Below, piece after piece: positions 15,914 to 57,573 of a stretch of 64,000 nucleotides of DNA (the stretch's first letter is position 1; each line of letters opens with the position of its first letter). Source of the DNA: Octopus bimaculoides (lineage: Eukaryota); the NCBI RefSeq assembly GCF_001194135.2, contig NC_068991.1, forward strand, positions 40,574,481 to 40,638,480. The letters are read 5' to 3'. The position numbers and the translations under genes are program-made. The notes beneath the pieces were generated by a model. The model was not told where the DNA came from, did no database searches, and worked only from the letters and a program-made list of their open reading frames with translations.

Positions 15914-15949
15914 ATGGATCTCAGCAAGAAAGATGTATTAATCCAGTGG
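15914..15949 (+). CDS. NUMA1: NuMA-like coding exon 1 (MDLSKKDVLIQW)
   Basis: Acceptor ctttacttctgtag before 15906, ATG at 15914, donor TGG|gtgagt; phase 0. The exon ends after the conserved W of Hook/NuMA helix 1. Confidence 0.8.
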
Positions 15950-18900
15950 GTGAGTAAGATGTATGAGTATACTTATTTTAATCCCCATCTAGTGAAAAGT
16001 TGTATTAGCTTAGTAAGAATTCTAGGCTTAGTTTTCTTGTATTTCAAATATTCTTCTCTAAATGACACATGTTTCTGTTTCATATATTCTTCTTAAATAC
16101 ACCTTCTTACCTGTTTATCTACTTGGATGAGATATTGAATCGCTAAACTATACATGGTCATTTTTCCCCAAGCCTCACCCCACATTCCCTTCCCTGTTTT
16201 CAGAGTTGGCACTGTCAATGTAGGCACACTGAAAGGTAGGTCTAGTGATATTGTAGAGATGCTTGAAAGGAAACGGGTTGATGTATGCTGCACACAAGAG
16301 GTAAGATGGAGAGGAGCTTCAGCTAGGGTCCTCACAGGTAAGGCACATAGATATAAAGTCTTCTGGCAAGATAACATGGATGGAGTAGGAGGGTGTAGGC
16401 ATATTCCTTGCGAAGAAATGGGTGGATAAGGTCATAGAGGTTGTCAGGGTATGCGATAGTGCTTAAGCTCAAGTTAGTCCTGCAGAACAGCACAGCTACA
16501 ATTATCTCTGCCTACGCCCCACAAGCAGGGCTACCAAATGATCAGAAGGACCGTTTTTATGATACCCTTCTACAGGCTACCTCAAAGATGAGTGGCAATG
16601 ACCTCATCATTGTGGCTGGAGATTTTAATGGGCATGTTGGGCAGAAATCCGGTATCTTCACTAGTGTACATGATATTGGTTCCCAGAATGATGAGGGAAC
16701 TACGCTACTGCAGTTTTGTGATGCATGTAACCTTTTAATCTGCAACACTAAGTTCAGGAAGCTAAACAGCCACCTGATAACCTATCAATCAGGGGACTCT
16801 GCTAACCAGATTGATTTCATCCTCACCAGACAGCGGGATGCAGGGTTCCTCTTAATACAAAGACCCTCCCAGGTGAGGAATGCATCTCAATGTGCCCGTG
16901 AATTATCGTTGTTATTTGGTGTTAGCAAGCAAACAATATTGACTCACCTAATTCAAATCGGTGAAGTGAAAAAGTTGGATAAGTGGGTTCCATATGAACT
17001 CAATGAAAATCAGAAACAGCAACGTTTAGAAGCCTGCATTATGCTACCTTCTCATCATAAAAACGAATCATTTTTTTATCGAATTGTAACATTTGATGAG
17101 AAATGGATCCAATACAACAACTGTAAATGTTCAGCACAATGGTTGGACAAAGACGAGCCACCAAAACAGTCCAAAAAGCAAAATTCATCAAAAGAAGCTG
17201 ATGGTGTGTGTTTGGTGGTCTGACGTAGGTGTGATCCATTATGATTTCATTAAACCTGGCTCATCAATCATGGCCAAAGTATACTGCAGCCAACTGGTGT
17301 GATCCATTATGATTTCATTAAACCTGGCTCATCAATTACGGCCGAAGTATACTGCAGCCAACTGGACCATATGATGCAGAAACTTACCAAAAAACAGCTT
17401 AGATTAGTCAACAGATCCACTCCTATTTTATTGCAAGACAATGCCAGACCACACATTGCAAAAATGACATTGGCAAAACTACAGGAATTGGAGTTGGAAG
17501 TTCTACATCATCCACTATACTCACCAGATCTTGACCCCACTGACGACGACGACTTCCAGAATTTGGATAACATTTTGATAGGAAAAAAATTTAATTCTGA
17601 CGATGCTGTAAAACAGGCCTTCCAAGATTTTATTGACTCTATATTGCCAGGCTTTTACAGTTCCAGACTGGACAAACTACAGCCGAAATGGCAAAAGTGT
17701 ATTGGCAATATGGGTGCATGCTTTGATGAATAAAACTATTCCTTGTATTTATAAAACACTAGCAAACTTTTTTTTCTTTTCTACAAATTTCATACTTGAC
17801 GACCTAATATATTGTAAAAGGAAATCAGTCTCACGTATGTTATTAAAGTATTTTCTTTCATTCTTCCCTTCCAGTTGAACAAAATAAATCCTCACCTTGT
17901 CATAGAATCGCTCTCTGATTTGAGAGAAGGAGAGCAGTTTATTGCTTTATTGAACAAAATGTAAGTATATTTTGTTAACATAGTAGTTTGTATTATATAT
18001 TCATTTATGTGAACTGTGGGGATGAGATGAGCCAGAAGGAAAGGGTTGTGATGTCAATGGTCAAGGGGCCTGACTAGAACAGGAAGGGGAAGAGAGGAAG
18101 TGAGGGAAGCAAGACCAGGGTCATCCTCTTTTGGCTTGGTGCACTCACCATGAATGGATATCAGCAGAGTGAGCTAGCGGGATTGGTAATAGCAGCTGCT
18201 AACATTAGGTGCGATGGGTAGAGCACATGTTTTGGACTTAGTACAGTTGGACAGTCAACAACAAGTAGGTAGGTGAACTGTATCTTATTTCCCCACATTA
18301 CAATTCCCTCATACAGCAAGTTATTTCAGCACTTGTGTATAGATATATTTCTCCATTGTTGTTGTCCCCTTCCATGAGATGGCAGTAAAGTTAAGGATCA
18401 GCAGTGATGCTGTCAGACCTTTCTATGGTGAAGGAGATGTAGTGGCCTGGATCTGTAAGATCAAGGTAGTGGCCAGGCTACAAGGCATCAATGATGTAGC
18501 AGGTCTCATGGCCTTCTACCTGGAGGGAAGCACACTGGCACTGTACTTCGAGACGGATGAGGAAGATCAAGTGGCACTTGAGGAAAGTCTATATGGAGGA
18601 AACATACACCACATTTGCTAAGCTGGGAATGGTCAGGTGGACAGGGGAACAGGTCAATGAGTATGCCACGGAGGTTCAGAGACTGGCTATGCTATCTGGT
18701 TTTAGCAGAGAGGGTCTAGAGAAGGCAACACATCTGGCCTTCATAAATGGCTTTCCTGGTGACATTGGTGCAACTGCTGGGCAACAAGAAAATGGAGATG
18801 AGGGAGCTCATCACTCAAGCTCATGTGTCTACACAAAACACCAGGTAGAAGGCAGTGGTGATGGCAGCTGCAGAAGCCTGTGACGTAGTGCAACAACCGG

Positions 18901-21900
18901 TAAAGAACGAAGAGGAGAAAACTGCCATGAAGTGACAGTGACCATTCATGGGTGGGTGCTTCAAGTGTCAGGGACTGCACAGAGATGAAGCCCAGACCTG
19001 TTTGCTACTGGTGCAGGCAGGCTGGGCATATCACTCGAAATTGCAGCCAGGGAAAAGGCCACAGGGAAGTTGCTGCCTCTCAAACTTACCCTCGTGTGCA
19101 AGTAGAGATGCTTGTGCAGTTGCTGCTCGTAGTTGAAGTCTTGGTTGAGGAAAAGGTGTTCAAAGCCCTTGTGGATACGGGCTGCATGACGATTCTCATG
19201 ACCCTAAGGGTGACAACAAAAATGGAAGGGGACAAATAGTGTTTGGGCAGTCATTGCCAGCAAAATTGGATGTAAGGGTAGCAGTGCAGGGCATAACATT
19301 GGGGCGTTGGGCATTTGTGATTGACCATGTGGTAGACGGAATTGGCATGGTAATGGGGATGGACACAATCAGCCGCCTTGAAGGTGTCAGTGTTGGTGGA
19401 GACATGGTTTTATTTGGTGGTTCAGGGGCTTCATATGCCATGAATCTGCAACATGAGAGGGAGCAGAGCTCCACAAGGGAGTGTACTGCTTACATCAGTG
19501 AGGACAGAGATTTTCAGGTGGTGTTCAGTGGTCAGTGGTGGATGGTAGAGTGTTGCTGGAAAGGAGAGCCCCTGATGCTGAAGAACAGGCTGAGCTGCTA
19601 CCAGCATACCTTGAAAGGACATACCAAGAGTGAGTTTGAAGGAAAGGTAGAGAGGTGGATTAAGGAGGGTGTCCTTATCCTGTGGAAGGAGGAGGTGGTG
19701 AGCAGAGTACTACCACTAATGACAGTGGTGCAGCCAACAAAGGGCAAAGTCAGGCTGGTACTAGACTTTTGGAAGAGGAATGGCCACGTATTGTACCACA
19801 CAGGTGGTGAGGTGACTGACATCTGCGGTGAGATGTTGCATGAATGGAGACAGAGGACAAGGGTAGCGATGATTGTTGACTTGAAGTCAGCATATTTTCA
19901 GCTCCATGTGAGCAAGAAACTGTGACAGTATCAGCTGGTGCAATATAAGGGCCAGACATACTATTTGACTAGACTGGGTTTCAGGCTAAATTCTTTGCCG
20001 ATGATCATGGTGACAGTGCTCAAGTCTATCCTGGGAAAGGTAGACAGGATCAGAAGGGCCACCAATTCCAATATAGATGACATCTTGGTAGACGAGACTG
20101 TAGTTCCTGCCACAGAGGTTGTAAGTCATTTAAAGAAGTTTGGGCTGATTGTGAAGTCCTTGGAGTCGATGGTTGGAGGAGTTGCACTGGAGCTCAAGTT
20201 TCAAAGAGATAAAACAGGCCCATTAGTGTTTTGGAGGGGGAATGAGATCCCGGAACTGGGTACCAGCATCAGCAGGAGAGAACTAGTCTCAATGTTTGAA
20301 AGACTAGTGGGTCACTACCCAATCCCAAGGTGGTTGCAAATAGCATGCAACTACATCAAGAGACAAGCAGATGGGGCAAACTGGGGAGACAGTGGCAATG
20401 ATGTGGGAGATCCTAGAGAGGACAAGAGCAGAAGACCCAGTAAGAAGGAACTAGTGTGTGCCTAAATTGGAGAATGGAACTGTATGGTGTGATGCTAGCA
20501 GCATAGCGAGAAGGGTTTTACTGGAAATCAGAGGTGTCGATGTGGAGGATGCGACCTGGCTTAGAACAGATGATTACAACCATATCAACATGGTTGAGTT
20601 GGTGCTGAAGTGGGTGAATCTGACACTGAAATGGGGGCTGCACTCAATTAAAATCCAAACTGGATCGGTAGGATCATTGATCACTGGTGAAAAGAGTGTT
20701 TGAACCAAAGGGAGTTGCAGAGATGTTAGTAAAGCATTGCCTAGGGTTCTAGGAGAGCTGGCTGCCAAATTTTACTTGAAGCTGAAAGGAACAAGGCAGA
20801 CATTTTGATCAGGGTGAAAAGGTCTGGTTGGCAGAGCTGGAAGATTCGAAGCAGGGAATAGCTGCAGGATGTCGGTTAAGTAACTCGGAATTAAGGAGAC
20901 TTCATGCCATGCATCATATGGGCATGGGTAGAACCGTATATCTTGCCAAGAGGGTTGACACCAACGTTACTAGATAGAGCATCCAAAAGGTGGTCGGGAA
21001 CTGTGACAGGTGTCAATCCAGCGACCCTGCTCTGGGTGTGCATGAGCAGGGAATCATTTCAGTAGAGCACAACTGGAAATAATTGGCAGTGAGTGTGACA
21101 CACTACCGGCAGGGGACATATCTCTTGATGGTTGACTGTGGGCCAGGTTGGATGGCTATTTGGAGAGAAATGAAGACAGGCAGCACGGACAAGATTGCTT
21201 GTATCCTGAACAAGATATTCCTGGAGCGGGACCCTGTGATTGAATTACTGATAGACAACAGCATTGCATTTCGTTTGGAGATACTGTAAGAGATGCTTGA
21301 TAAGTGGAACATACGCTGCTTCTTCAGAGTGGCATACAGGCTGAGTGGAAATGGGATCATGGAAAGACATCAACAAACGAACAAGGTCATGGTGGAGAGG
21401 GAGCGCATCTCACCGCCGAAAGCAGTATTCAGGTGCAATATGTCACCCCAATCAAGACAGGCCAAAGAATCTGTGTCACACAGAGTGATATTCAGATATG
21501 AATGGCGACATCCAAGTAAGCCATCAGGATGCCCTGCAGAAGAGAGAAGGACTGTCTTCGTGAAGGTGGGAGATGAAGTCTGGGTCAAGCCCTGAAGGCA
21601 TGCTGCACATCTCAGTGGAAAAGAGGAACAGTGATGGCTGTTAATTCCAAAAATAACGTTTCTGTGGATGGAATACTGCATCATGTCTTGGATGTTCACA
21701 GAATTGTTGCTTCGCCGGAGGAGAGGAAGAGAACGAGGCTCCTTCCCTACAGAGATCACAGTGTGTGAGGCGTCCACCTGGGTGGATGGCAGATTTTGAC
21801 ATTGAGCAAAGTGTGGATGTGATCTTTGAGATAAAGGAGATGTGTGGGGATGAGATTTGCGAGAAAGGGCTGTGACATCAGCAGTCAATGGGCCTGATCA

Positions 21901-23999: not shown

Positions 24000-24030
<31 letters not shown>

Positions 24031-27000
24031 NNNNNNNNNNNNNNNNNNNNNNNNNNNNNNNNNNNNNNNNNNNNNNNNNNNNNNNNNNNNNNNNNNNNNN
24101 NNNNNNNNNNNNNNNNNNNNNNNNNNNNNNNNNNNNNNNNNNNNNNNNNNNNNNNNNNNNNNNNNNNNNNNNNNNNNNNNNNNNNNNNNNNNNNNNNNNN
24201 NNNNNNNNNNNNNNNNNNNNNNNNNNNNNNNNNNNNNNNNNNNNNNNNNNNNNNNNNNNNNNNNNNNNNNNNNNNNNNNNNNNNNNNNNNNNNNNNNNNN
24301 NNNNNNNNNNNNNNNNNNNNNNNNNNNNNNNNNNNNNNNNNNTCAAGGCAGTTTTCCAGCATGACCACAATCCAATGACTGAAACAAGAAAAAGATAAAA
24401 AATATATTAAATTCCTTTAGTCAGTTATAGTTTTCTGAAGATTTCAAATTTTAATGAAAGTATAGACAAGGCATCAGTGGTTTTCTAAAATACAATCTGT
24501 AACAGTTATTTATTTGTTTTATTTAGAAAAGATACTTCTCATGATGTGACTACAAGGAAAGAACGCTTTGAAATTATACAGAAGTTTATTGAGGGTATGT
24601 TGTTTTACTATATTCTTTGTTGTTGTTGTAGTTTTTTGACTCAGTTATTTTGTGATTGTTTCAGTTCTAGTTTGATAAGTATTGTTAGACTATTTTATAG
24701 AGATCATGTATCCCAGGGAAGAAAACTAAATGAAGAAGTGACACTGAGGAGTGTTCAAATGTTCAGTTTAAAGTCACATAAATATCTTCAGTTCACAAAA
24801 AAGCATTGAACTATATCCTTTAAGGAACATAAATTTTGTTTACTTTGTCCTTTCTACGTTATGAATGCATAACAACTGCTATTTGATAGGTGCTCCTTTA
24901 GGAAAATCAGCAGACCACCACTCTCCTTTTGCAATCTCAGGAAGTCACCCACTCACCCTCTCCAGTCACTGGCCTACTCACTGTCACTGGCCTACTCACT
25001 GTCACTGGCCTACTCACTGTCACTTTTCTCTACATCTCACTCTCCACTGAGGCAGTCATGTTTCCCTAGAATGCAAGATTCCTTTATCTGTCTCTCAAGC
25101 CTACTCCCACCTCAATTGAGGGAGTTTGTCTTGCAAGTTACTTTGTGATCTAACTGTTGCTGGTGCCACATAAAAAGCACACAGTGCACTCTGTAAAGTG
25201 GTTAATGTTAGGAAAGACATCCAGCTATAGAAAGCATGACAAAGCAGACAGCAGGAATTGGTGACTTGCCAATTTCTGTGGATCCATTCAATCCATGCCA
25301 GCATGGAAAACAGATGTTGAATGATGATGGACATATAATACTATTCATATAAAACTTTTTAATTTGTTGGCCTCACGGAGGTGAAGTGGCTGAGTGCTTT
25401 TTGAGTGTTGGACCTCACAGAGGCAGTGACCGAGACCTTTGGCATTATATTGTGCTTGAGCACAATCGCAATTGTGGCAGATACCGGTGTCGCACAAATT
25501 GGCACCCATGCCGGTGGTACATAAATGCACCCGAGTGTCACAGAAATGGCACCCGTGCCAGTAGCACATAAAAGCACCCATTACACTCTCAGAGTGATTG
25601 GCATTAAGAAGGGCATCCAACTGTAAAAAGCCATACCAAATTAGACTGGAGTCTAGTGCAGTCTTCCAGTGCCCCAGCCCAGTCAGACCATCCAACACAT
25701 GTCAGCATGGACAACGGACATTAAATGATGATGATGATGATGTATCATATTTACTACCATAGATAAAAATGAATGTAATGAGATTAAAACACCTCTTTAA
25801 TATTGTTTTCAAATTTTGGCACAAGGCCAGTAATTTCGGGGGAGTGGGTTAAGTTGATTACATCGATCCCAGTATTCAACTAGTACTTATTTTATCAACC
25901 CCGAAAGAATGAAAGGCAAAGTCATCCTTGGCAGAATTTGAACTCAGAATGTGAAGATGGATGAATCTCTTTAGTTAATACTAATCCTAGATGATAATCT
26001 TCTAATTTTACTCCTTGTTCTTGCTGGCATGACTAACCGAGAAACAATATCTTTGTTTCTAGATAAATATGATTATAAACTTGTTGAACAAGTAAATTTT
26101 GACAAAGCTGATGAACTGGATTTTGCCAAGGTAAGCTATTTAAGGATGTCATTGGTATATATATACTGTTCGTATCCACATATTTGTGTACAAGTGTTAT
26201 TTTAAATGAGACCATTAAAATATCTTTATTGCTAAACAAATATATTCTCACCATTCTTCCCCCACTCCCCACTAAATATTCATTTTATGAAAAAATATTT
26301 TTTCTATATAGGAAAAAGCAAAATGCATAACACTAAAACTTCTTATGAAAGGTAAGGCACCTTTCACAATACCAGCTTTAATAGTGTGATACTTTAAGTT
26401 CAGAGATCCATAAAGATTACATTTAAACTAGAATTATCCAAGTGTTCCCTCATAGTGTGGCTCCTGTAGTTACATTTGAATTACATATTCAGCTGATAGT
26501 ATACATTATAAAAAGACATCAAGTAAACTGAATAGTTGATTCTACATGCATACATATAGGCATGGTGCAAGATCATTTGTATGTTCATGGTATTGTAGCG
26601 TACACTCTAGTGAAATTCCTCTCCCCTTTATTATATATACAGGCATTCGAGCATAGCAGACAACAGCTAGCTTTTGGCCACTATTTGGACCCCGTTGTAT
26701 CCACTACTCTGACTGGTTCGTATTGACGCAATTTGTCTTTTACTCTCTCACGCCAGTATGTAGCATATAACTAATCGGAGCCCCTAAATAAGATCATGTG
26801 AGACAGCCTTTTTTCAACCCCATTTGAGCCTACTGTTCCTTATAAAAACTCACCTTCTCCTTGACTCAAGGTCTTTGGTTCCTGACCTTTTAAGGTCTAG
26901 CCACTGACCACACAAAACACAACCAGTTCTAGTGACAATGTCAGACGACCCGTCCAACAACATTATGGCAACCTCCATCTTCATTGCCACCATCTTCTTA

Positions 27001-30000
27001 ATGACGTCAACAACATTTCTATGTACACAGCTCAACCAGCAACTAGCACAGGTTCCAACATAGCACTGTTCATGAATTACTTCATTATGGTTAACAGCAA
27101 ATATATAACCTGCGAAAACTCCTGTACAATTAACCCAAGCAGCATCATTACAGCCACAACTTCGTATGGCACATACCACAACTGGCTCTGCATCAACGCC
27201 ACAGCTTCTTGATACAGTATTTCTATTATCGTGTACAATTAACTATGAACTGGTATTTCTAATTCTTGTGTCTACGAACATTCGTTTAACTTCTCATTAT
27301 AGACTCTCTCACTGTTTCTTCCTCATTGTTATTCTTATATGTACTTAACGCACATGCATACATCCATGTCTATACACTTAGTTCTCATGACAGCCTGTCT
27401 ATTATTCTGTATACATGACGCACACACAGACACACAGGTTAACATATCAAATAAAACTTCTCTCAAGCATTCTATCCGGTTGTGTCTCTCTCTTTGCCCA
27501 CTGGCATATATGCATTATTACAGCCTTCTGAACAGAGTTGTTATTAGATGGTTTCACCACCTGAGACCACGACCTTTCAATAATGCTAAACCCAACATTC
27601 TAAATCACCATTCCTTCTAAAATGGTGACCCAACATAGAACATGGACCACCGACCATCTAAAGTATTGTTGCAATATATATACATAATGTGAAGATGCAT
27701 GGTCTAGTGGTTAAGGTGTTGCATTCATGATTGTAAGATCATGGTTTTAATTCCCAGGTCAGGCAATGTGTTGTGTTCTTGAGCAAAACACTTCATTTCA
27801 CATCGGTCCTGTCCACTCAGCAGTAAATGAGTTCCAGCAATAGCTGGGAAGTTAACTCTGCAAAGAAATGGTATCCCATTCAGTGGAGAATGATGTAATC
27901 TTTATTGCATATATCCCATGGAAACCACATTAAGCTCCAGCTTTACAAGTCTTAGGATTCAGCCTCATTGAGGAGATGACAAAAAACTGAGACTTATGGC
28001 AGTTTGTTGTGCTTGAGAAGCTAAGTAAAACTGTGGCCATCCATGCATACAGGCAAGTCCTTTACAACCTGTGCCAGCACAATGTAAAAAGCACCCATGC
28101 TGGTGCCACATAAGAAGCACTTAGTCATGTAAAATGCACTTGTGCCAGTGCCACATAATAAGCACTTGTGCTGATGCTACATAAATAGCACTCATGCCAG
28201 CACCATGTAAGAAGCAGTTATGTCAGCACCAAGTGTAAAGAGCACATATCGGCGCCATGTAAGAGTACCCATGCTGGTGCTATGCGAAAGCGTCCAGCGG
28301 ACTCTGTAAAGTGGTTGTCATTAGAAAGGGGATCCAGCCATAGAAACCTTATCAAAACAGACAAATCATGTCTGGGCAGCTCTCCAATTGGCCAGCTCCT
28401 GTCAAACCGTCCAACCCATGCCAGCATGGAAAACTGACATTAAATGATGATGATGATATATTACTAGCTTGCAGTGAATGTTTTTGTTAAATCAAAAGTT
28501 GATTGTATTCTGTAATTGGATTATTTCAGATTGCTGTGCTTGTGTTGGCAGCTGGGGTAAAAGGGGAACCTCAGGAAGAATTCATGAAGGCAGCACTCTC
28601 ATTGAATGTGCAGTCACAATTAGAGATAATGAGCATTTTAAAGCAAGCCTTAACTCTTCCTTTATATAATCTTCAACTAGATAATCTCTTCACCCATAAA
28701 CATTGTGAGTAATTTTTATGTCTTTTTCATTTTTGGCTCAATTTCCATCTATAAATATATTTTCCATCATATCATTTCCTCACATAGATTTTGCCCACTT
28801 ATCTGCTATGGTGGAAAGGGCATGGACTTAGAAAGGATTTCTATGACTGTATAATAAGAAAAGATAATGAAGATTTGTAGATATCTAATTCCCAACAGAT
28901 TTATCAGTTTCATTAAGCTTCTATATTGCTAAGTTTTTTGACGAACACTTCATAAAACATGAAAATGTATGTGAATAATCATGGCATAATCATTAGCAAT
29001 ACAATTTTAGGAGAGTGGGTTATATATCATTAGATATACACCTAACTTTCCTACATTAAATTAGAAGTGAACTGAACACAGAAACTCCAAACTGATCAAC
29101 AACAACAAATATTTATTGTACGGTGGAAAATAAAACAGCTTCCAATTGTCCGGTTTTAGAGTAGCCTGAAATGTAGATATACGGTTCCTCGAGCTGGTGT
29201 CGTTGTAGAGACAACTTGGTTCAACCACACTCAAATGGGAGAGCTTGCTTAGACGTCTTGCTTGGTCGCTGTCAGGCTTGGTAAAGAGGCAGACTCATAG
29301 CGGGAACGCTTCGATGTTGAAACCCACGCATGCGTGGTTAAGGATTCAGCAATGGCGCCTATGCCTTTTGGTGCCAATATGACGTCACTACACAATTATT
29401 TTGTGTGAATTCTTACTGCAAGCACTAGGAATTAAGAAACTATATGTGCTCATTGGAACCTCAAAGCAGTCTCTTACTCTACTTAAAATAACAACTATAT
29501 CTCCTTCAAATCCAGCCAACTGCCTAAAAAAAAACAAAAAAGAAAGAACACTAATAATGTAGTTCAAGACACATTATACTTAACAAAACAGATTGATCTT
29601 GGCTGCAATATGAGGATGGGCTGAAAAGTTCATTGGCTGACTATGAAGGAGTGATGCTAGAGCAGTGAGATCTTGCATACATTAATTTCAACTCTCCTTA
29701 TTAATAACTGTATTGTTTCTTTTCAGGTAAACTGACATCTCACTATTCAAAGAAGACTTCAGAAGTAACTAGTAGTGACTTTTCTTAAAAATCAGCAAAA
29801 TTTGGCACCATCATGTTATCAAGTACCTGCAGAAAAAGGCGTTTAGCCCCAAGGAGATTCATACTGACATGGTTGCTACATTAGGGGACGACACTCCAGC
29901 TTTATCCACAATGCAAAAGTGGGCAGCTGAATTTAGGAGGGAAACAGGGAGTCTTGAAAATGACCCAAGGTTTGGTTGTCCTGTAACTATCACCACCAAG

Positions 30001-32308
30001 GAAAACATTGTTCATGTTCACTACATGGTGATTACCCCATGAGAGGGTTGAGAATGTTCTGCACAATGAACTTGGCATATTGAAAGTTTCTGTTTGGTGA
30101 GTGCCACGTCTTCTGACACCTGCTCAAAAGTGCACCAGGCTGATGACATCACAAGAAAATCTGAGACATTGTTTGAGGCAGATCCAGCTGGTTTCCACAA
30201 ACATTTCCTAACCCAGGATGAGTGTTGTGTTCATGACTTTGAACCAGAGACAATGTATTCAGTGGAAACACCTCTCCTGCTCCAAAGAAAGCCAAGGTTG
30301 TTCCACCTGCAGGGTAGGTGATGGCCTCAGTGTTTTGGGATGCAAAAGGCATTGTGTTTATTGTCTATTTTCAAAAGAGTCAATAGAGAGTACTCTGCCA
30401 ATTTGCCAAAGAAGTTATGAAAGGTTATCAAGACCAAATGTCCAGGAAAACTGCAGAAAGGATCTGGTTTCCTCAGGACAATGCTCCAGCATTGATTTCA
30501 ATGGTTCCTGTGCATGACTGTGGCTTTGAACTGGCTGATCACCCTCCCTATTCTTCTGAATTGGTGCCATCTGAGTATCATCTGTTCCCCAACATGAAAA
30601 ATCACTTGGCCGGAAACCAGTATCGCAGTGATGATGACATCATATCTACTGTTGATAACTCTTTTGAGCAACTGGATGAAAGCTACTTCACCAAAGGGAT
30701 CCATGCACTGCAGCACTGATGGAAGAAGGGTGTGGAGTGCAAGGGGAGCTATGTTGAAAGATAAATCTCATTTGGTCACATTCCATGAGAGTATCTTGGT
30801 CAGCCTATGAACTTTTCAGCTGACCCTTGTACCTGATTATAGATCTGACTGATCAGTACTGAGCCAAGGCTAAACTACAACTTCTATCAAAAATGTAATT
30901 TTATTAATTTTATACCAAAAGCAAATCTCTATGGGCAAAAACTATTCTTGTGTTCTTGACCAACATTGTGCATACTTAAATCTGATGACTTTTATTTGAA
31001 ATAAAAACTATCTATTGGTGATATAGAGTTACTTCATTACATCTTATGATTTCTATATTAATCTGTCATTTTACAATTTTCCAGTGGAAATCTTTGACTC
31101 AGAGAATAATGAACATTCAGGTCAGTTTATTGCTTATATTAGAATCTAATTATATCATCATCATCATCATTTAACTTCCATTATCCATGCTGGCATGGGT
31201 TGGACGGTTTAACTAGGGCTGGTAAGCTGAGGGGCTGCACCAGACTCCAGTCTAATTTGGCATGGTTTCTATGGTTGGATGCCCTTCCTAACACCAACCA
31301 CTCTGATGTGTAATGGGTGCTTTTCATGTGCCACCAGCATGGGTGCTAGTTACATGACACCTGCATCAACCACAACTACAATTTCACTTGGCTTGATGGG
31401 TCTTCTAAAGCATGGCATATCTCCAGAGGTCTCAGTCATTAGTCATTGCCTCCATAAGGCCCAACGTTCAAAGATCATGCTTCACCAGCTTGTCCCATGT
31501 TTTCTTGGGTCTACCTCTTCCACAGGTTCCCTCCACAGTTAGAGATCAGCACTTCTTTATACAGCTATCCTCGTCCACACGTATTACATGACCATATCAG
31601 TACAGTCATCTCTTGCACATCACATCTGATGCCTCTTATGCCCAACTTTTTTCTCAAGATGCTCACACTCTATCATACATGCACACTAACATTGCACATC
31701 CAGTGAAGATGCTAGCTTCATTTCTTACAAGCCTACACATGTCCTCAGCAATCACAGCCCATGTTTCACTGCCATGTAGCATAGCTGTAAATACACAGGC
31801 ATCATACAATCTGCCTTTCACTCTGAGTGAGAGGCCCTTTGTTGCCAAGAGGTAGAAGCTCTTTGGACTTTACCCAGTTTATTTCTGTGAAATATTAGAA
31901 AACTTTTGAACTGTTATTTGTCATGATTTATTAACAAATCAAAGGACAACTTGGAAAATTCTTGAAACATGTGCCACTACTGGGCAAGATGATGTCCATG
32001 GAAGAAAATTCTAATCTCAACTTGCACAGTCACAATATGGAAAATTATAACCATACTGCGATAATCAATGTGTACTCTTAATAATAACCAAGTCAATATA
32101 GGAAATTATCGCTGAACTGTTATAATTATGATGAATGTATGGTCCCATAATAACTTTTTAAATCAGGTGAGAACTGAAAATAAAGCAAATTTGTTTGTCC
32201 CATCTTTCATGGTATGAAAATGTCATGTAAATGGAATGGCCAACTATGACAGAAAAGAAGAGTGTGATTGACGTGAAACATAGGGAAATAAAAACTGATG
32301 AGGCTAAC

Positions 32309-32346
<38 letters not shown>

Positions 32347-38300: not shown

Positions 38301-39750
38301 CCTTCTATTGTAGAGATGTCTTACCATGACACTTCATGGTCATCAGACAAAAGTGCCATTCATGCAAACTATGTAAGTCTTTCAGTAATTCTAATTATTT
38401 TTGTTTATTCTTTTTTTGTATACATTCATTGAAAATGTTTCTATAATAAAGATTATTTTTAAATGCACTTTAAAAAATTTTATTGTTAATTGTTATATTA
38501 GGGATATGAATGTTGTGTATGTATGTAGATATATTGACATTCACTAGACTATAAAGATACATTAGAAGACTTCTATAGTCACATGGAAAATATCTTTTCA
38601 ATCTATGCTTAGAATATGAGTTGAGCACTAGTAAACTGCAAAATACTCATCAAGCTTAGCCTCTACTTCTTTTTTTTATTGCTGTTTTTGCAGATTCCCA
38701 TGCTTCTCTGTCACCATCCAAATCCATTATTATGAATTTGAACTAGGAGCTTGAGTCATAGTGAATCTTTCATTAGCTGATTACACAACCATTGTCACTG
38801 CCCCTATGGATCTATTACAGTTAATCTCTTGATAGAGCTTGGTGGTCCTGACCACTGATTTTCAAGGATTCTTGCACACAGCGTCATTGTAAGAAGCACT
38901 GTCAGCTCAGTTGGGCTTTTCCAGTACCTCTTGACAATTCACCATGTTGCAGTCCTATGACTTTGCCAAATCCCTGGCAGGGTGGCTAAATAGGTGTTAC
39001 GCCTTGTTAAAGAGCAGCCCGTAACTATGCAGGGATCAGTCACTACTCTCTGAAGTATTTCAAAATGTCAGCATTAGCCACCTCTACTTACAACCGACAA
39101 TTTTATACATCCCATGACACCAATTAGAAACTAGAGGTAGAAGGCCTTTATGAGTTAAGTACCTTGATCGGGGTTACAGAACAGCATCATTAATGAAATA
39201 GGACTTGTCAACTGATTGACTGAGGCTGTCTAGACTCCAATTGTCTGTTGTATCATGGTTTCAATGGCTAGATGCCCTTTCTAATGCCAACCACTTAAAA
39301 AGTGTGCTGGGTGCTTTCTATGTGCCACCAACATGAGTGTGTTGATGCAGCACTGGCCTGTTTAAGTGGCACTGGCACCTGAAAGGACAAGCCTATATGT
39401 GTGGAAGACAGCAATTTTACTTAGCTTGACACATCTTATCAAGTACAGCAAATCACCACATCTCCCAGTCCCTTGTCATTTCCTGTGACATCCAGTGTCC
39501 GAAGATCCTTTCTCACCACTTCATCCCATGTCTTTCTGGGTCTACCTCTTCCACAGGTACCCTCTACAATTTGAACTAGGCACTTCTTTACGCAGCTGTC
39601 CTCATCTATACTCATGACATGACCAAACCAGCACAGTCTCCCCTTGTGCACATGACATCTGAAGCCTCTTATCCCCAGTTTTCCTCTTAAATCATTTACA
39701 CTTTGTCATGCATGCACATTGACATTGCCCATCTACTGGAGCATACTAGC

Positions 39751-39782
<32 letters not shown>

Positions 39783-42700: not shown

Positions 42701-45700
42701 TAATTTTGGGGTAAAAAGTGAATTGGCCCCTGAGATTCAGCATGGAAAATTACATAAAAAAAATAAATTAAAAAATTTTCACTAAACTCTAAAATTTCCA
42801 CAGGTGCAGCCAAACAGAAAAGATCCATTATTTCTCCTCGTATTTACAGCCAGGTCACTGGTGTGTTGTTTAACTGATATAGTGGAATAGACCTGGTGTA
42901 ATAAAAGACAGAATCATTAAAACAAAAGTGAAGTAAATATAATGGTTTATTCTGTTATTGGTTTCAGTTATTAGCCTAGCAATTATGGTAGAAGAACCTC
43001 CTACAAGGGCATCTGTGGGTTATATTGTTCCAGTAATTTTAGTTATTCACCGTACAGTTTCGTTGCTTTATTTTATAAAGGGATGTGACTCAATTCACTG
43101 TTTCACACCTCTGTGTGCAAATAAAGACACACACGCACATGTATATACATATGACAATTTCCACAGTTTCCCATGCCCCACATTTCATACACTAAGAATT
43201 CATCAACCCAAGTCTACAACAGAAGACATTTGTACAAGGGATCTAAGTCAGAACCATTTAGTTGCAAAGCCAACTTCTTAATCATGTGGCAATGCTTATG
43301 CTGTCACTATTAACATATGCACATTTTAAATGTCTACCATGATTTAGTTGTTTCAGTTACAGTATACAATCTTAAATCAAGCAGCTTATTAACCATGTAA
43401 AACTCATATTTTTGAATATCAAAATTTGTAATATATTATTGCATTGCAACACCTATTTGCAGTTCTAAAAAAATTATCTTTTTTTAATTTGAACTAGATT
43501 AATCTAAAAGAACAAGAATTATGGGTAAAAAATGAGGTAACTAAACTGTTCCATTTTAGCTTTTTCTGTTTCTGCTTCTGTCATTTATTTAGCAATCTTA
43601 TTTCTTGTTCATTTTTGTTTGATATCTGTATCACTCATGTTTCATAACATAATAGAATTCTATTTCATTGCATCCCAAAGAATTTGTGGTACATTGCTTA
43701 CTGTAGCAGTAATTATTTAACTGTTTGCTGTAGTATTCATGTTTGCCTGTTTGCTGTAGCAGTCATGTTTGTTTGGAGTAGCATTCATGTTTGTCTGTCT
43801 GCTGTAGTATTCATATTTGTCTGTTTGCTGTAGCATTCATGTTTGCCTGCTTTCTGTAGCATTCATGTTTGCCTGCTTGTTGTAACATTCGTGTTTGTCT
43901 GCTTGCTGTAGCATTCATATTTGTCTGTTTGCTGAGGCAGTCGTGTTCACCTGCTGTAGCATTCATATTTGTCTGCTTACTATAGCATTCATATTTGCCT
44001 GCTTATTGTAGCATTCACATTTGTTTACCTGCTTGCTGTAGCATTCATGTTTGCCTCCTTACCGTAGCATTCATGTTTACCTACTTGCTGTAGTATTCAT
44101 GTTTGTTTGCAGTAGCACTCATTTTTGTTTGCTGTATCATGTTTGCTTGCTTGTTGTAGCATTCATATTTGCCCGTTTGCTGTAGCAGTCATGTTTGTCT
44201 TTGTGCTGCAGTATTCATGTTTGCTTGCGTGTTGTAGCATTCATATTTATCTGCTTGCCGTAGCGTTCATATTTAACTGTTTGTTGTAGCAGTCATGTTC
44301 GCCTGCTGTAGCATTCATGTTTGCCTGCTTGTTGTAGCTTTCATGTTTGCTTGTTGTAAGGTTCATGTTTGTTTGCAGTAGCAGTCATGTTTGTCTGTTT
44401 GCTCTAGCAGTCATGTTTGTTTGTTTACTGTAGTTTTCATGTTTGCCTGCTTGCTATAGCATTTATGTCTGCCTGCTTGTTGTAGCATTCATGTTTGTTG
44501 CCTGCTTGCTGTAGTATTCATGTTTGTTGCCTGCTTGCTGTAGTATTCATGTTTGTCTGTTTGCAGTAGCATTCATTTTTGTTTACTGTATCATGTTTAT
44601 CCTCTTGTAGCATTCATGTTTGCTGTAGCATTTGTGTTCACCTGCTAGCTGTAGCATTCATGTTTGCCTACTTGCTGCAGCATTCACGCTTGTTTGCCTA
44701 CTTGCTGAAGCATTCATGTTTGCCTGCTTGTTGTAGTATTTACGTTTGTCTGTTTGCTGTAACATTCATATTTGCCTGCTTGCTGTAGCATTCATGTTTG
44801 CCTGCTTGCTGTAGCAGCCATGTTTGTCTGTCTGTTGTAGCATTCATGTTTGCCTGCTTTCTGTAATGTTTATGTTTGTTTGCTTCCTTTAGCATTCATG
44901 TTTGCCTCCTTGCTATAGCATTTGTTTGCCTGCTTGAAGAAGCATTCATGTTTGCCTGCTTTAGTATTCTTTGTTTCATTTCTTGAATTCTATACTGTTC
45001 ATATTCTCTTGCATGCTAACAAGTGTACATGTTCCATTGATCGTTGTATTCATGTTATTGAAGTGACATTTTTAGTTGACATTTTTAGTGACATTTTTAG
45101 GCAAAAATATAGCAACTGACTAAGTTACCTTAATCGTTTAGCATTTAAACTGGCCATACCCAGCTTCTCATATCTACCCTACAATGTCATTCCTGTTGTG
45201 ACCAACCTGTCATTTTTTTTTTAAATCATAGTGTCAGCAGTACAACATTATCCTTTCTTTTTGAAGACGATAAGTTATGATTTGAGGAAAATTTGCCTAC
45301 TATTTCTTGCATTTTGAGTGACTATATTGAGACTTCCTTGTTGGCTTTAGTTGAAATGTTAAATGTTGTCAGCAGGTCTGGTTGTGATAAAATTAATGCT
45401 TTGTAACAGTGCTATGATAAAAATGAATTTTTAAAACATTCTAATAATTTGTTAACTAAAGGTACCACAAAATACAACAGTGTGTTTAAACAATGTTTTA
45501 AAAAATATAATCAAACAATAATCAAAATATTTTGATAAAGACTTTAATTTTGAATCAGTACTGAGAGAAAATTTCCAACATCTGTAGAAAAATCATTTTA
45601 GCTACCATATTCACTAACACACAGTTGTTCACTTCTCTCTGTCTCATTTTTTTTCTTTCTCTCTTTCTTTCTTTCATCTTTCCTTCCTTCCTTCTCCCCC

Positions 45701-48700
45701 CCCCCACTCACTCACACTGAGTCTGTCAGTTGACATAATGGTACCTAGGTAGAGTGGATTACAGAAAGTTAAAATATTTCTGTTGCAGTGATAAAATATA
45801 AACCATTGCCATGTTTGTCAGTATGCCAACATACTTGACTCCATTGTCATTTGTGCACACTCAAGAAAATGTTTGTAAAATTACTTATTGTACAACTTTT
45901 ACATGTATTAGGAAATTAAAGAGAAAAATATGCTTCTCAAGAAGTTGGACCATGAACTGGAATATGAACGACATCATTGCTTTGAATTGGAATGTAATTT
46001 CAAAGCATACCAGAAGATTATTTCTTCAAAAGGTAATGTAACACAGCTATTCTTTCTAGATGTTCATTAGTGGCTGGCACTTCGTATCATCATCGTCGTC
46101 ATCATCATCATTTATTACCTTCTTTCACATGCTTGCATTATTGAGGTAGATTTTCTACAGCCTGATGCCCTTCCTGTCACCAATCCTCACTTGTTTCCAA
46201 GCAAAGTAATATTTCCTAGTTGCCGGACATGTTTTTTCATGGAAGACTCAAACAACATCACATGTCATTGAATAATTTATATATTGATTCAATTAGTTAC
46301 TTCTAATATTAATCACTCAAATAGGAAGACGGAGTGAATTCTATTGGGGTTTTTTTATGCAATCAAAACTATGCAGAGTTAGATATCTTGTTTCAGGACA
46401 CATTTTCAAATTCACTATTTAGTATTTTTCCAAAAGTTGGTGGCTTTTACCTAGTTTAATAAAAATATTCAAATGTTTGTGTCTTTATTGATTTTCATGA
46501 TGAGAATTCCAGTTGTTTGATCAGAGGAACTATTTATTAATGGTGTTACATAAAAAGAACTGGTGATGGTACCATGTAAACAGCACTGGTGATGGTGCCA
46601 TGTAAAAAGCCCCCAGTAAACTCTGTGGAGTGGTTGGCATTAGGACGGACATACAGCCGTAGAAACCAAACCAAAGCAGACTATGGAACCTGGTGTGGCC
46701 TCTGACCTTACCAGTTCCTATCAAGCTGTCCAGCCCATGCCAGCATGGAAAAATGAACATTAAATATTGATGATGATCATGATGAAATAAGTGAAAGTAG
46801 CTGAGTGTTCCACAGACACTTGTACCTTTAATATAATCCTCAGACAGTCTAGCAGCATATAACAAAGCTGTGTCTTTGAATTTTTAAGCACATTCATCAT
46901 AGAAACTTCCACAGCATTTCAGTGTATCCATTTTCACTTACCAGGCAGCTATAGTACATGATAATTACCTATGGTGTTGCTCACTGGGATCGAACCTGGT
47001 ATCTCATGATTACAAAATGAATTTCTTAACCATTTAGCCATAACAGCCACTGATCTTTCGCTTGTACATATTCTCTCATTATTTTATGCATATTCTTTCA
47101 TTATTTTGTATATATTTTCTCCTTACTTTGTACATATTCTCTTCCGCACGTGTACATATTTACTCATTATTTTGTATATTCACTTTATTTTTCCTATTTC
47201 TATATCTTTTTTTTTTTCTTCTTTTCTATTTTCTGGATTCTTTAGATGACAAGATCCAAGAACTGAACAACCAAATTCGAGAATTGAAGAAGTTGCAAGA
47301 CCAGATAGATGACTACCACAATCTCAAAGATGAATATGACAAACTAGAGGCTACTGCTACAAAGTATGTGAAATCAGTTCATTTGGCAGTGACTGCTGCT
47401 GTGGCGGTAGTGGCAGCTGCATTTGTTTCGGCTCTTTGCATTCTGAGTTCAAATCTCATTGTGGTTGACTTAGGTGGTTGTCTTTTCGGCACTGTAATAT
47501 TCTTGTCACCACTATTATGTTGTGGCGATATTCCACGTCTTATTATCTTTGACTTATCTGTCATGCTATTGCTGATAGCTCCGCAAGACAATGATTTTGT
47601 TATGTCTACATTGATGGTAACTCAAACTCATATATATCACGTAACTGACACTGACTCCAACTGAGAACTTGTACAATGACTCTACTACTACTCACCTCCT
47701 ACAACAACTGACTATCTGACTTTATAGTGGCTGATCATACCACTTTGTCATGTGAAAAATGTACCATTTTCACTACATCTCCCCCTTTAGTTTCTTTTTT
47801 TCTTTTTGAGAAGCAAGTAATTTTATTTAACTTTATTCTCCCCTCGTCCCTTTTTAGCATTTTTTTTTTCAACTGTAATGTTGTTGGTACCTGGAATGTA
47901 TTATATAGCTATTCCATAGATTCTTCCAATCTGTTTGGTCCATTTTCTATGAATCTCTTCTTCAATTGGTTTCTGAGTTTTTTTCAGTACCTTTTCTGCT
48001 TTTAATTTCATATATCATTTTTCCTATGTACTTTATAATTTTTCCTTCTTCCTGGTATTGTTTTCCATTTTTATACGGCCTCATTTTGGATTGTCTTTCC
48101 TGGTACTTTTTCTTTCCTTGTCAGGTAACAGTTTATCAAAAACTGAATTCACCCTCCTTGTGAACATCAGTTCAGCTGGTGAGCTTCCTGCTGATGTATT
48201 GGGGTTTGGAGTCACCCTGTATACCCCTAGGAATTACTGCAGAGTAACTTCATCTGTGGCTTCCTTATTTGCTTTTCTCAAAGCTCTTTTAAAAGTGTCC
48301 ACAAAATGCTCTGTCTGTCCATTTGATCTGGGATGGTAAGGTGCTATTGTTTTATATTCTACTGTGAACATTTCGTAGAATTTTCTAAATTCACTGGACA
48401 CAAATTGTGTTCCATTGTCAGATACAATCACATCTAGGATGCCAAATTTTGTGAGTAATTCGGGCAAAAAATTTACTACAATTGAAGCAGTTGGTTTTTT
48501 ACACTTTACAATTTCCAGCCATTTTGTAAAACTATCAACTACTACTAAGTAGTAATAACCATTTAACGGACACACAAAATCGATATGTAGTCTTGACTGT
48601 GGACTTTTTACTTCTGGCCAAGGCTCCCATTTTTTAGTAGGCAATTTCGCTGCTAGAGCACATCCTCTGCAGCATTTTACTACGTTTTCAACTTCCTTGC

Positions 48701-51700: not shown

Positions 51701-54700
51701 TTTTAAAGTAACCTACACATATTCAATGTACTTACTTTATAATTAGAAGATTGCATCATCAACAGGGTGAGGTTCCTCTTTGTAACGATGTCCTTGCCCT
51801 TCTTTTAATTTAGCACAAAGCTCTGCATTGGGTGTATAAGTTGTGCAGTTTACATCATGAAAAAGACTTTTTGAATGTAACCAAGCATTAATTGTTTGGG
51901 TATGCAGTTTAGACCTATTCTTGACTTTAATGTTATTTAGGACTGAAAATATTCTCTTGGCTGCAGTTGAAGAATGTGGTAATGATAGGAGCTGAAACAT
52001 AAAGCATGATAGGACTGCATAAAAAGCTTCATCTCCAGATTTTTCCTTAGAAATTTCAAACCAATAATCTTCTGGTTTGGTAGCTTCAGTTTTGTCATTG
52101 TTATCTTGAAGTTTAAGTTCACTCCATTCTTTATTAAGAGCTTCAATCTGACTCTCCTGAACAATATTTGGAAATTTGCATGCCAGAGGAACAATTGAAC
52201 TTGGACCATTGTAATCATGAATACTAACTGGGTCTAGTGCCTCTAGAAGCTTCAGGTTAAGGAAGAAATCATATGCAAAGAAGTGCTGAAAAATTTCCTT
52301 TACAAGGCACACATAAAAATTTTATGTTTTTGCATGAAATTATCTCAATTCATTTGTACTAATAGATGAAACTTCCTTTATGTAGATGCTTTCAGCTTTT
52401 GCTCCTCTGTAAATTTCAATTATGGGAAGATACACTAATGGATCATTGATATTAATTTCATGTAGCTCTTTATTTTTAACAATTTCTTTTTTAACAAAAT
52501 TGCCAAGTATTCATTTAACAGTACATTTAATAGAATTGTGCAGTTTGTGCATTCTATAGCTTTCTGATTGGAAATCTAAGTTCAACTTAATAATATCTGG
52601 CAAAATATATGCTAAAGATGCATAATACATTTCTGTGATTGGATTTGTTAATGAGTTCAGCACATTTGAAGCTGCACTGTTGTTATCTTCAGTAGCAGCA
52701 GTAATAAAGAATAACACTAGAGCAGGCCACTGTTCTAGTATTCTTTTGACAACTTGTTCTAAAGATAACTTTCTTTTATTAGCCACACAGGGCTGCACAC
52801 AGAGGAACAAATACAACTGTAGAGCTTTTCTTTAAAAAANNNNNNNNNNNNNNNNNNNNNNNNNNNNNNNNNNNNNNNNNNNNNNNNNNNNNNNNNNNNN
52901 NNNNNNNNNNNNNNNNNNNNNNNNNNNNNNNNNNNNNNNNNNNNNNNNNNNNNNNNNNNNNNNNNNNNNNNNNNNNNNNNNNNNNNNNNNNNNNNNNNNN
53001 NNNNNNNNNNNNNNNNNNNNNNNNNNNNNNNNNNNNNNNNNNNNNNNNNNNNNNNNNNNNNNNNNNNNNNNNNNNNNNNNNNNNNNNNNNNNNNNNNNNN
53101 NNNNNNNNNNNNNNNNNNNNNNNNNNNNNNNNNNNNNNNNNNNNNNNNNNNNNNNNNNNNNNNNNNNNNNNNNNNNNNNNNNNNNNNNNNNNNNNNNNNN
53201 NNNNNNNNNNNNNNNNNNNNNNNNNNNNNNNNNNNNNNNNNNNNNNNNNNNNNNNNNNNNNNNNNNNNNNNNNNNNNNNNNNNNNNNNNNNNNNNNNNNN
53301 NNNNNNNNNNNNNNNNNNNNNNNNNNNNNNNNNNNNNNNNNNNNNNNNNNNNNNNNNNNNNNNNNNNNNNNNNNNNNNNNNNNNNNNNNNNNNNNNNNNN
53401 NNNNNNNNNNNNNNNNNNNNNNNNNNNNNNNNNNNNNNNNNNNNNNNNNNNNNNNNNNNNNNNNNNNNNNNNNNNNNNNNNNNNNNNNNNNNNNNNNNNN
53501 NNNNNNNNNNNNNNNNNNNNNNNNNNNNNNNNNNNNNNNNNNNNNNNNNNNNNNNNNNNNNNNNNNNNNNNNNNNNNNNNNNNNNNNNNNNNNNNNNNNN
53601 NNNNNNNNNNNNNNNNNNNNNNNNNNNNNNNNNNNNNNNNNNNNNNNNNNNNNNNNNNNNNNNNNNNNNNNNNNNNNNNNNNNNNNNNNNNNNNNNNNNN
53701 NNNNNNNNNNNNNNNNNNNNNNNNNNNNNNNNNNNNNNNNNNNNNNNNNNNNNNNNNNNNNNNNNNNNNNNNNNNNNNNNNNNNNNNGTCGTCTATGAAA
53801 CGCCGGAGATGTCGCAGTCTCAGCGCATGTCTGTGCATCATCAACCACGGCATACCCAGCCCTCCATTTAGCAGCTGTTGACAGCAAATGGATCGCCTAA
53901 CCATCGGAACGCTTCCCTTCCACAAGAAGCGGAAGAGTATGCGTTCCAGTTTGGTGATGGTAGGGTCGGGACAAGGCACGACAGTCAGACGGTATTCGAT
54001 GACGGATGCTATGTACGCGTTCGCCACCTCCACCCGACCTTTTAGGGATAGCTTCTTCTCAGTCCATTGCCGGGTGAGAGTGACCACCCTAGTCGTTATT
54101 TCGCCCCAGTTCTTCTCCATTTGGAGGTCCGGACCGAACCAGACTGCAACTTACATGTAATAATTTATGAGGATTTGTTTGAATAAATGCCTGAAATTCT
54201 TCATATTCCTGCAGTCTCTTTGGGCTATTTGAGAGGAATGAATATATGCTTCTAGCAAGTTCTAAGCATGAAGTTAATTCTGAACACGCCTTTGATGTAC
54301 AGATATGCATAGAGTGACAGACACAACCCTGAATAAAGAGAGAGGGAACTTTGTTCTTTAGTAATGCCTGCACACTTCCCTTCTGTCCCATCATTACACT
54401 AGCATTGTCACTGGCAAATCCTCTCAAATTTTCAAAGGGAATGTTATGTAAGGTGAAGAATCTTTCAATAGAGGAAAAAATTCCATTAGCAGAGCAATCC
54501 TTGGCTTCCAAAAGAATCAAACAACTATCAATAATTTTTTTGAGTGCTGCAATCATAAAATCTAGCTAACAGAACAAGCTGGTTTTTTTGTACTTACATC
54601 AGTAGTTTCATCAACAATTAATAAAAACTTGCACTCTTAACTGTTTAATGAGGTTTTCAAAGTAATAAGGGCCTAAAACATTTTATATATTTGAGTAGCT

Positions 54701-55252
54701 TTGGTTCTTGCACATTTGATATCTTTAACTATTTTGGAATCAGGACATGCATTTTGAATTAGTCCAGGTAAATGATCCATAAGTCTCACTGGTAAGTTAT
54801 GTTTTGCAGCTGCTATGTTTGTAATATGAACAGAAGTTGTACACTGCAAAAATTCGGTCAGTTTTCTACTTTTAATTTCTGAATTAACATTTTTAATATG
54901 CTGTTGTGTTTGAGGAGAGTCATTCTCTTTTAGTGCCTTATAGTGCTTCAACACACGAACTCACATAAAGAATCTTACAAACCAAATCCAAAAACAAAAT
55001 TTTTAATATGTTAAAACAAAAATACATATAAGGAAAACCTTATCTTTATTGTAGAATTCACCTTATAAAGTCAGCAATTGTTTCTATTGGATAAATATAT
55101 ATAGATATAAAAATGATATTTGGATCTACTTGTTATACATGAGGAATTACCTTGGATGCGTATTCTACTTACATTTACTGGTGTCTGGTTGTTGGATATA
55201 GTTAACCAAATTTGTTTAAAACTGAGTGCTTTGAATTTTTTAATCTCTTTTT

Positions 55253-55332
<80 letters not shown>

Positions 55333-57513: not shown

Positions 57514-57573
57514 TGTGTATGTGTGTGTGTGTATATATGTGTTTATATATTTGTGTGTATGCATATATATATA

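Follow-up and report, generated by a model that had tools for sequence, protein, structure and literature searches.

A 64,000-nt stretch of the Octopus bimaculoides genome (contig NC_068991.1 of assembly GCF_001194135.2, positions 40,574,481 to 40,638,480; the window) carries on its plus strand a chain of 11 short exons spread across 40 kb. Judged from their sequence, these very probably make up the first 304 codons of the octopus orthologue of NuMA, known as NUMA1 in vertebrates, Mud in the fly and LIN-5 in the worm. An earlier note, made from the letters of the window, had described a hidden ten-exon gene with an open frame of 291 amino acids (aa). We rebuilt these ten exons independently, working outward from the quoted peptides through AG- and GT-bounded open segments of fitting phase. 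All ten exons, their phases and their count hold: joined, they give 873 nt (291 codons) with zero stops and end phases of 0, 2, 1, 0, 1, 1, 0, 1, 2 and 0, and each exon is flanked by an AG acceptor and a GT donor, exon 1 instead beginning at its own ATG. What had been overlooked is a 39-nt exon at 43498-43536, which three RefSeq isoforms add between 38314-38372 and 45912-46032, so that the corrected N-terminal segment comprises 11 exons, 912 nt and 304 aa, not ten exons. The exons are as follows; Argonauta denotes the orthologous protein of Argonauta hians, GAB1599847.1 (2233 aa).

15914..15949, plus strand: exon 1, coding from the ATG, 36 nt, MDLSKKDVLIQW; ends in phase 0 after W, donor gtgagt; 9 of 12 residues are identical to Argonauta
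17875..17960, plus strand: exon 2, 86 nt, phase 0 to 2, LNKINPHLVIESLSDLREGEQFIALLNK(I); Argonauta tblastn E=8e-6
24527..24594, plus strand: exon 3, 68 nt, phase 2 to 1, KDTSHDVTTRKERFEIIQKFIE(D); begins 185 nt past the assembly gap at 24031-24342
26063..26130, plus strand: exon 4, 68 nt, phase 1 to 0, KYDYKLVEQVNFDKADELDFAK; Argonauta tblastn E=9e-7
28530..28704, plus strand: exon 5, 175 nt, phase 0 to 1; encodes the hook domain's C-terminal half (IAVLVL...FTHKH)
31085..31120, plus strand: exon 6, 36 nt, phase 1 to 1; acidic linker (L)EIFDSENNEHS(E); predicted
38314..38372, plus strand: exon 7, 59 nt, phase 1 to 0; linker MSYHDTSWSSDKSAIHANY; predicted
43498..43536, plus strand: exon 8, missed by the earlier note, 39 nt, phase 0 to 0, INLKEQELWVKNE; acceptor ...gaactag, donor gtaact; predicted
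45912..46032, plus strand: exon 9 (formerly counted as 8), 121 nt, phase 0 to 1; here the coiled coil begins, EIKEKNMLLKKLDHELEYERHH...ISSK(D); Argonauta tblastn E=1e-3
47246..47363, plus strand: exon 10 (formerly 9), 118 nt, phase 1 to 2, DKIQELNNQIRELKKLQDQIDDYHNLKDEYDKLEATAT(K); Argonauta tblastn E=8e-9, 57% identity
56146..56251, plus strand: exon 11 (formerly 10), 106 nt, phase 2 to 0, MKSQNDELKSLKSENTLLINENTKVYEELNKMKEM; Argonauta tblastn E=1e-6, 64% identity

At the sequence level, the exon chain is confirmed as real, beyond chance. The Argonauta orthologue matches exons 2, 4, 5, 9, 10 and 11 one by one (tblastn, E from 1e-3 to 3e-10), exons 1-5 align to it without a break at about 60% identity, and the whole 304-aa segment is 51% identical (E=6e-85), with more colinear blocks following up to Argonauta residue 1876. 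The assembly has three gaps here, at 24031-24342 (intron 2), 39783-40021 (intron 7) and 52840-53787 (intron 10 of the 11-exon model). None touches an exon; all three are intronic, and therefore no reading frame crosses unread sequence. On both sides of every gap the exons remain colinear and on one strand. As the earlier note had stated, a mechanical track of open reading frames (ORFs) misses most of the gene: only 4 of the 11 exons lie wholly or partly within an ORF of at least 60 aa.

The part of the chain that weighs against full confidence in its details is the linker, where exons 6, 7 and 8 are based on the RefSeq prediction together with splice scores and frame logic, and so should be taken as candidate exons. 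An ab initio scan of splice sites and phases alone could not pick the linker exons from dozens of candidates. Exon 6 has the top splice scores within its intron space and is present in all three RefSeq isoforms, and neither tblastn nor an intron search detected an Argonauta counterpart. Exon 7 bears a weak, colinear likeness to the Argonauta linker (DTSWSSDKSA against ETSPSRMPSDKPVA) and supplies the phase 1-to-0 exon that the frame calls for, because exon 5, which ends in phase 1, gives a TGA when joined straight to EIKEK. The 39-nt exon 8 also surfaced as an ab initio candidate and is found in XP_014769243/5/6; like exon 6, it has a length divisible by three and is frame-neutral. A search of introns 5-8 for Argonauta's longer linker returned chance-level matches only, apart from the weak one on exon 7. 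Just past exon 8, intron 8 holds at 43695-44961 some 49 tandem copies of a 26-nt unit (73% match), an array that in one frame reads as ...CLPACCSIH... repeats and was the source of many false exon candidates. Downstream of exon 11, the next RefSeq exon (ISDKQHIIEKL...) is absent from 56252-64000, where only chance-level matches for further exons were seen; the gene therefore runs past the window.

Is the gene, then, hidden? It is not: the chain is identical to residues 1-304 of three O. bimaculoides RefSeq isoforms, XP_014769243.1, XP_014769245.1 and XP_014769246.1, so this word of the earlier note has to be withdrawn. The gene is already public, and what is new is its identity and the correction of its name. 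RefSeq calls the three isoforms "myosin-8 isoform X1", "myosin-6 isoform X3" and "myosin-8 isoform X4", UniProt titles A0A0L8HUN9 and A0A0L8HUM2 "Uncharacterized protein", and the Argonauta orthologue is named "COP1-interactive protein 1-like isoform X2". This is just the kind of generic coiled-coil naming that the earlier note had foreseen for invertebrate orthologues.

The names themselves raise the possibility of a myosin heavy-chain-like gene, and introns crowded with the remains of RTE, mariner, MULE, integrase and hAT might suggest a pseudogene decaying among transposons. We give these two readings next to no probability. A scan of the octopus isoforms and the Argonauta protein, with E allowed to rise to 10, detected no myosin head family, and a hook domain occupies the N-terminus; the myosin names evidently stem from similarity of the coiled coil. 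A decaying copy is hard to reconcile with 304 stop-free codons over 11 exons, canonical splice sites throughout and 51% identity to Argonauta.

The public proteins were recovered by one route only. A word-indexed protein search with a partial peptide lacking exons 2-3 gave no match, and Pfam returned noise only on the same partial peptide; a search with a profile of the octopus and human hook domains found only vertebrate NUMA1 fragments and no cephalopod protein. Exhaustive phmmer with exon 5 (58 aa) found XP_014769245.1 (770 aa), 100% identical at residues 87-144, and Argonauta GAB1599847.1, 49% identical, with a single octopus cluster in all. Word-indexed searches had missed the octopus and Argonauta proteins even though the collection searched contains both and they have many 5-residue words in common with the query. 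The exhaustive search also returned a 553-aa repetitive protein (E=3.8e-6), which we rejected as a false positive, as it is of low complexity and contains seven copies of ...STFNVQLDN....

A second effect concerns the Pfam scans of these proteins. The match to HOOK_N_NuMA (PF21670) is present when the input is 144, 151 or 304 aa long (39-43 bits) and is lost, even with E raised to 10, once 450, 770, 918 or 2233 residues of these proteins are submitted. The most likely cause is that the composition filter of HMMER reacts to the coiled coil. Since the hook domain vanishes in full-length scans, domain-based naming of such proteins fails systematically, and this loss probably explains the generic public names ("myosin", "CIP1").

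What, then, does the N-terminus resemble? The protein is laid out as a hook domain (residues 1 to about 145), an acidic, serine-rich linker (about 145-176) and a heptad coiled coil (177-304), in line with the Hook/NuMA-type domain followed by coiled coil that the earlier note had proposed. HOOK_N_NuMA reaches 43.4 bits on exons 1-5 (144 aa; E=3.7e-11), against a Pfam cut-off of 27 bits, and the match covers positions 3-130 of the 152 in the profile; for the 304-aa segment the score is 39.4 bits, and for the N-terminus of Argonauta 40 bits. HOOK_N (PF19047) stays under its cut-off of 23.5 bits in both species (12.9 in octopus, 21.1 in Argonauta), and CH reaches 17.5 on the octopus domain. The Pfam profiles put NuMA about 30 bits over HOOK for the octopus domain. 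A profile-profile comparison by hhalign aligns the octopod hook with six vertebrate NuMA hook domains at a probability of 90.7% (E=1.2e-6, 119 columns), and a global alignment to residues 1-155 of human NuMA, a query identical to PDB 6QJA and 9HHL, is colinear at 24% identity. In the coiled-coil region, heptad contrast is 0.54 against 0.27 +/- 0.05 in shuffled sequence (0 of 300 shuffles equal it), with no proline or glycine. The start of the coil matches bird NuMA at a colinear position (BLASTP E=0.002); the window holds only its first ~130 residues.

Several of the domain comparisons weigh against the assignment to NuMA. BLASTP of the peptide against human NuMA 1-155 gave no match (E=2.3), and phmmer of the 144-aa domain against PDB found neither NuMA nor HOOK, a result repeated with the coiled-coil part. 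The octopod hook aligns with HOOK1/3 at a probability of 82.5%, with 24 inserted residues, which is nearly as good as its alignment with NuMA; vertebrate NuMA and HOOK align with each other at only 11%. When the octopod profile is run against PDB, HOOK3 scores 21.2 bits and human NuMA 16.0 bits, with HOOK1 also above NuMA. On these scores the octopod domain appears intermediate, and domain similarity alone would lean to NuMA only via Pfam's broader profile.

A further record is kept by the introns. We compared the octopus gene with the bird NUMA1 locus (Chordeiles), a mammalian NUMA1 contig and, as a control, fish HOOK3 (Characodon); the equivalences below are consistent in both MAFFT and hhalign alignments.

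Intron 1: octopus phase 0 after W; bird and mammalian NUMA1 the same; fish HOOK3 the same
Intron 2: octopus phase 2 in the I of LLNK-I, after an exon of 86 nt; NUMA1 phase 2 in the I/L of IID(R/S)-I / IINK-L; HOOK3 phase 2 in the I of LQK-I
Intron 3: octopus phase 1, in the last codon of FIED; NUMA1 phase 1, in the last codon (K) of FLQK; absent from HOOK3, whose nearest intron is phase 0 after DYYQE
Intron 4: octopus phase 0 after ELDFAK; NUMA1 phase 0 after ELxLAK; absent from HOOK3
Domain-end intron: octopus phase 1; bird NUMA1 phase 1, two codons away in the alignment
Coiled-coil-start intron: octopus phase 1 after ISSK; bird NUMA1 phase 1 after ITEK, aligned by BLASTP

Octopus and bird NUMA1 are thus alike in four exact hook-domain introns, one near match at the domain end and one exact intron in the coiled coil. 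A rough estimate puts four exact coincidences by chance on the order of 1e-8, given five introns in the ~430-nt bird domain. The exon ahead of intron 2 measures 86 nt in octopus, mammalian NUMA1 and fish HOOK3, and 89 nt in bird NUMA1. The agreement of the first four introns with vertebrate NUMA1, which the earlier note had proposed, is borne out on the bird locus, and the mammalian contig has the 86-nt exon. A caution applies to introns 1 and 2: they are also in HOOK3 and therefore cannot separate NuMA from HOOK, whereas the later ones can. These two introns would be ancestral to the whole hook family. HOOK3's own introns after NWRLK, DYYQE, CEQKQ and TAIQE are not present in the octopus gene. 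Vertebrate NUMA1 has an extra phase-0 intron after YK(I/T)Q (bird locus 8276/8530; mammalian fragments), within the equivalent of octopus exon 5, which could be either a vertebrate gain or an octopod loss, and the linker introns of octopus and vertebrate NUMA1 differ. Small as it is, the intron map gives clean evidence on evolution: HOOK and NuMA have two introns in common, and three more, introns 3 and 4 and the one at the start of the coiled coil, link octopus with vertebrate NUMA1.

Could the gene nevertheless encode the octopus orthologue of HOOK1-3, an endosome or organelle dynein adaptor? The octopod profile does find its best PDB matches in HOOK3 and HOOK1 (E=0.002-0.005), the hhalign probability with HOOK1/3 is high, introns 1 and 2 and the 86-nt exon coincide with those of fish HOOK3, and the segment AAGVKGEPQEEFMKAALSL resembles HOOK's GCAVNCEQKQEYIQAIMMM. 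Yet HOOKs of sea anemone, spider and bivalve have 47-59% identity with human HOOK3, and because of this an octopus HOOK would not sit at the 23% identity to HOOK1/3 that we find. Moreover, HOOK_N stays under its cut-off in both cephalopods, the HOOK coiled-coil family PF05622 is unmatched in every Pfam scan, HOOK3's later introns are missing while introns 3 and 4 match NUMA1 only, and the orthologue is 2233 aa long with a NuMA tail. We therefore consider a HOOK identity extremely unlikely.

A hook-domain coiled-coil protein of the CCDC88 (Girdin/Daple) type, which would likewise combine an N-terminal hook-like domain with a long coiled coil and whose size range includes the 2233 aa of the Argonauta protein, is a very improbable alternative as well. 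CCDC88 N-termini belong under Pfam HOOK_N, the cut-off of which is not reached here; the comparison with CCDC88 is one at the level of this Pfam family. Introns 3 and 4 and the coiled-coil intron match NUMA1, and the tail of the orthologue matches the LGN-binding/NLM segment of NuMA.

This tail is seen at the far end of the Argonauta protein. Its single PDB match is the LGN-binding fragment of human NuMA, 6hc2_B (E=0.0076; CEDEPNMFDWGRLTEIKRRN against CQDEPEQLDDWNRIAELQQRN), and spans the CxDEP...DW.R..E...RN stretch that leads into the NLM motif. Following the gene downstream, as the earlier note had advised, thus led to a NuMA-type tail in Argonauta and to no further exons in the rest of the window. 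The choice of NuMA over HOOK and CCDC88, which that note had favored, is supported by four observations, all drawn from sequence comparison: the contrast with the conservation of true HOOKs, the orthology with Argonauta, the NuMA-type tail, and the lack of a myosin head or HOOK coiled-coil family.

Two features of the O. bimaculoides models count against the assignment. The LGN/NLM tail is seen in Argonauta only, as the octopus models end near Argonauta residue 1876, and the ~190 residues that follow KLKEM in Argonauta are absent from them: the models jump from KMKEM to a block matching Argonauta at about residue 520, skipping 329 to ~520. Published coordinates of human NuMA put a CC1-box-like motif at 360-385 and a Spindly-like motif at 417-422, so that, judged by human coordinates alone, both would be expected roughly within the skipped stretch. 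It could be argued from these absences, and from the fact that all three RefSeq isoforms (730-918 aa) stop early with no tail seen in O. bimaculoides, that the gene belongs to the NuMA lineage and no longer does NuMA's job, for instance as a truncated or tissue-specific paralogue. We regard this as unlikely. The short isoforms end in hydrophobic, read-through-like sequence (...FNLLFTTMCCSFFVVLL), typical of broken models in a gapped assembly; colinear Argonauta matches continue up to residue 1876; and the exhaustive exon 5 search gave one octopus cluster only. Our candidate reading is that the missing ~190 residues and tail reflect broken gene models and not biology, because the assembly is gapped and the isoform ends look like read-through.

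The long introns and the surroundings of the octopus NuMA gene are rich in transposon remains. In intron 1 (16441-17733), an RTE-type endonuclease/reverse-transcriptase fragment adjoins a mariner transposase fragment (Pfam Exo_endo_phos_2 and Transposase_1), and a 68-nt direct duplication lies at 17228-17365; the arrangement has the look of nested insertions. Intron 2 contains at 18557-20465 a run of long plus-strand ORFs, one with DUF7047 (E=5.8e-11), which is probably retroelement gag-like. Past the last exon and outside the NuMA gene, long plus-strand ORFs at 60222-61292 look like hAT transposase (...DGTPSMIGKSQGF...), and a Pfam scan of them gave no match. An Rfam scan of the window found no families. 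The remaining mobile-element domains are these:

29824-30027, plus strand: Mos1-type mariner HTH_48, in intron 5
33897-34559, minus strand: MULE transposase, in intron 6
48234-48728, minus strand: retroviral-type integrase core, in intron 10
51743-52312, minus strand: hAT dimerisation domain, in intron 10

If the gene is a NuMA orthologue, its likely role can be proposed by analogy. The summary of Renna et al. 2020 given in PMC8047419 states that the NuMA hook domain binds a helix of the dynein light intermediate chain, and the hook domains of NuMA and Mud, with their light intermediate chain binding, are described in PMC8047419 and PMC12505299. By the same token, the octopus hook domain would bind the dynein light intermediate chain at its C-terminal helix, the coiled coil would dimerise the protein and lie along dynactin, and octopus NuMA would act as a mitotic dynein adaptor. 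The tail, beyond the window, would connect the protein with cortical LGN/Pins and with microtubules, allowing it to focus spindle poles, orient the spindle and pass on cortical pulling forces.

To our knowledge, the molecular basis of spindle orientation during cephalopod development has yet to be studied. The octopus "myosin-6/8" or "uncharacterized" gene and the Argonauta "COP1-interactive protein 1-like" gene would here gain their correct identity. With its NuMA gene under the right name, cephalopod work on spindle orientation has a reagent to start from, though current understanding is not overturned.

The likeness of the octopod hook domain to both families leaves room for speculation about its evolution. 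It may be a slowly evolving bridge form, like both vertebrate NuMA and HOOK1/3 in the profile comparisons and having the phase-0 intron after W and the 86-nt exon in common with both; we put this forward tentatively, at somewhat less than an even chance. If it were true, the NuMA and HOOK adaptors would have inherited a dynein light intermediate chain-binding module from one ancestral exon set, and vertebrate NuMA would be the divergent member. Cephalopod or spiralian NuMA could then be the best reference for the ancestral bilaterian protein, anchoring the hard-to-align Mud and LIN-5.

Finally, we would set the octopus protein beside the known members of the hook family. With vertebrate NuMA (NUMA1; hook structure PDB 6QJA, PF21670) it has in common a hook domain of the same length and no large indels, four hook-domain introns at the same position and phase, an intron of equal phase where the domain ends, an identical one where the coiled coil starts, and a serine-rich linker followed by coiled coil; in Argonauta, the tail carries the CxDEP...DW.R..E...RN LGN-binding/NLM segment. 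It differs in that the domain is only 23-24% identical and undetectable by BLASTP, the intron after YK(I/T)Q is lacking, the linker is shorter (~30 aa against ~55) and cut by other introns, and the octopod domain retains a HOOK-like GV.GE.QEEFM segment that is replaced in vertebrate NuMA. Drosophila Mud and C. elegans LIN-5 are the invertebrate members of the same functional family, likened here by description. Mud is reported to combine a Hook domain, detected by InterPro at its N-terminus, with a long coiled coil and an NLM motif (PMC12505299), and in the tail only the NLM is described as clearly conserved between vertebrates and invertebrates (PMC12505299). By contrast, the Argonauta tail aligns to human NuMA also over the preceding acidic LGN-binding stretch. 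With HOOK1-3 (PF19047; PDB 5J8E, 6B9H, 1WIX), the octopod protein has in common a homologous hook fold (hhalign 82.5%), the phase-0 intron that follows the conserved W, the 86-nt exon with its phase-2 end and a coiled coil after the domain. It departs from them in a domain that falls under the HOOK_N cut-off and is 24 residues shorter, and in its later introns; HOOK orthologues are far more conserved among animals, and the protein, as seen in Argonauta, is three times longer and ends in a NuMA tail.

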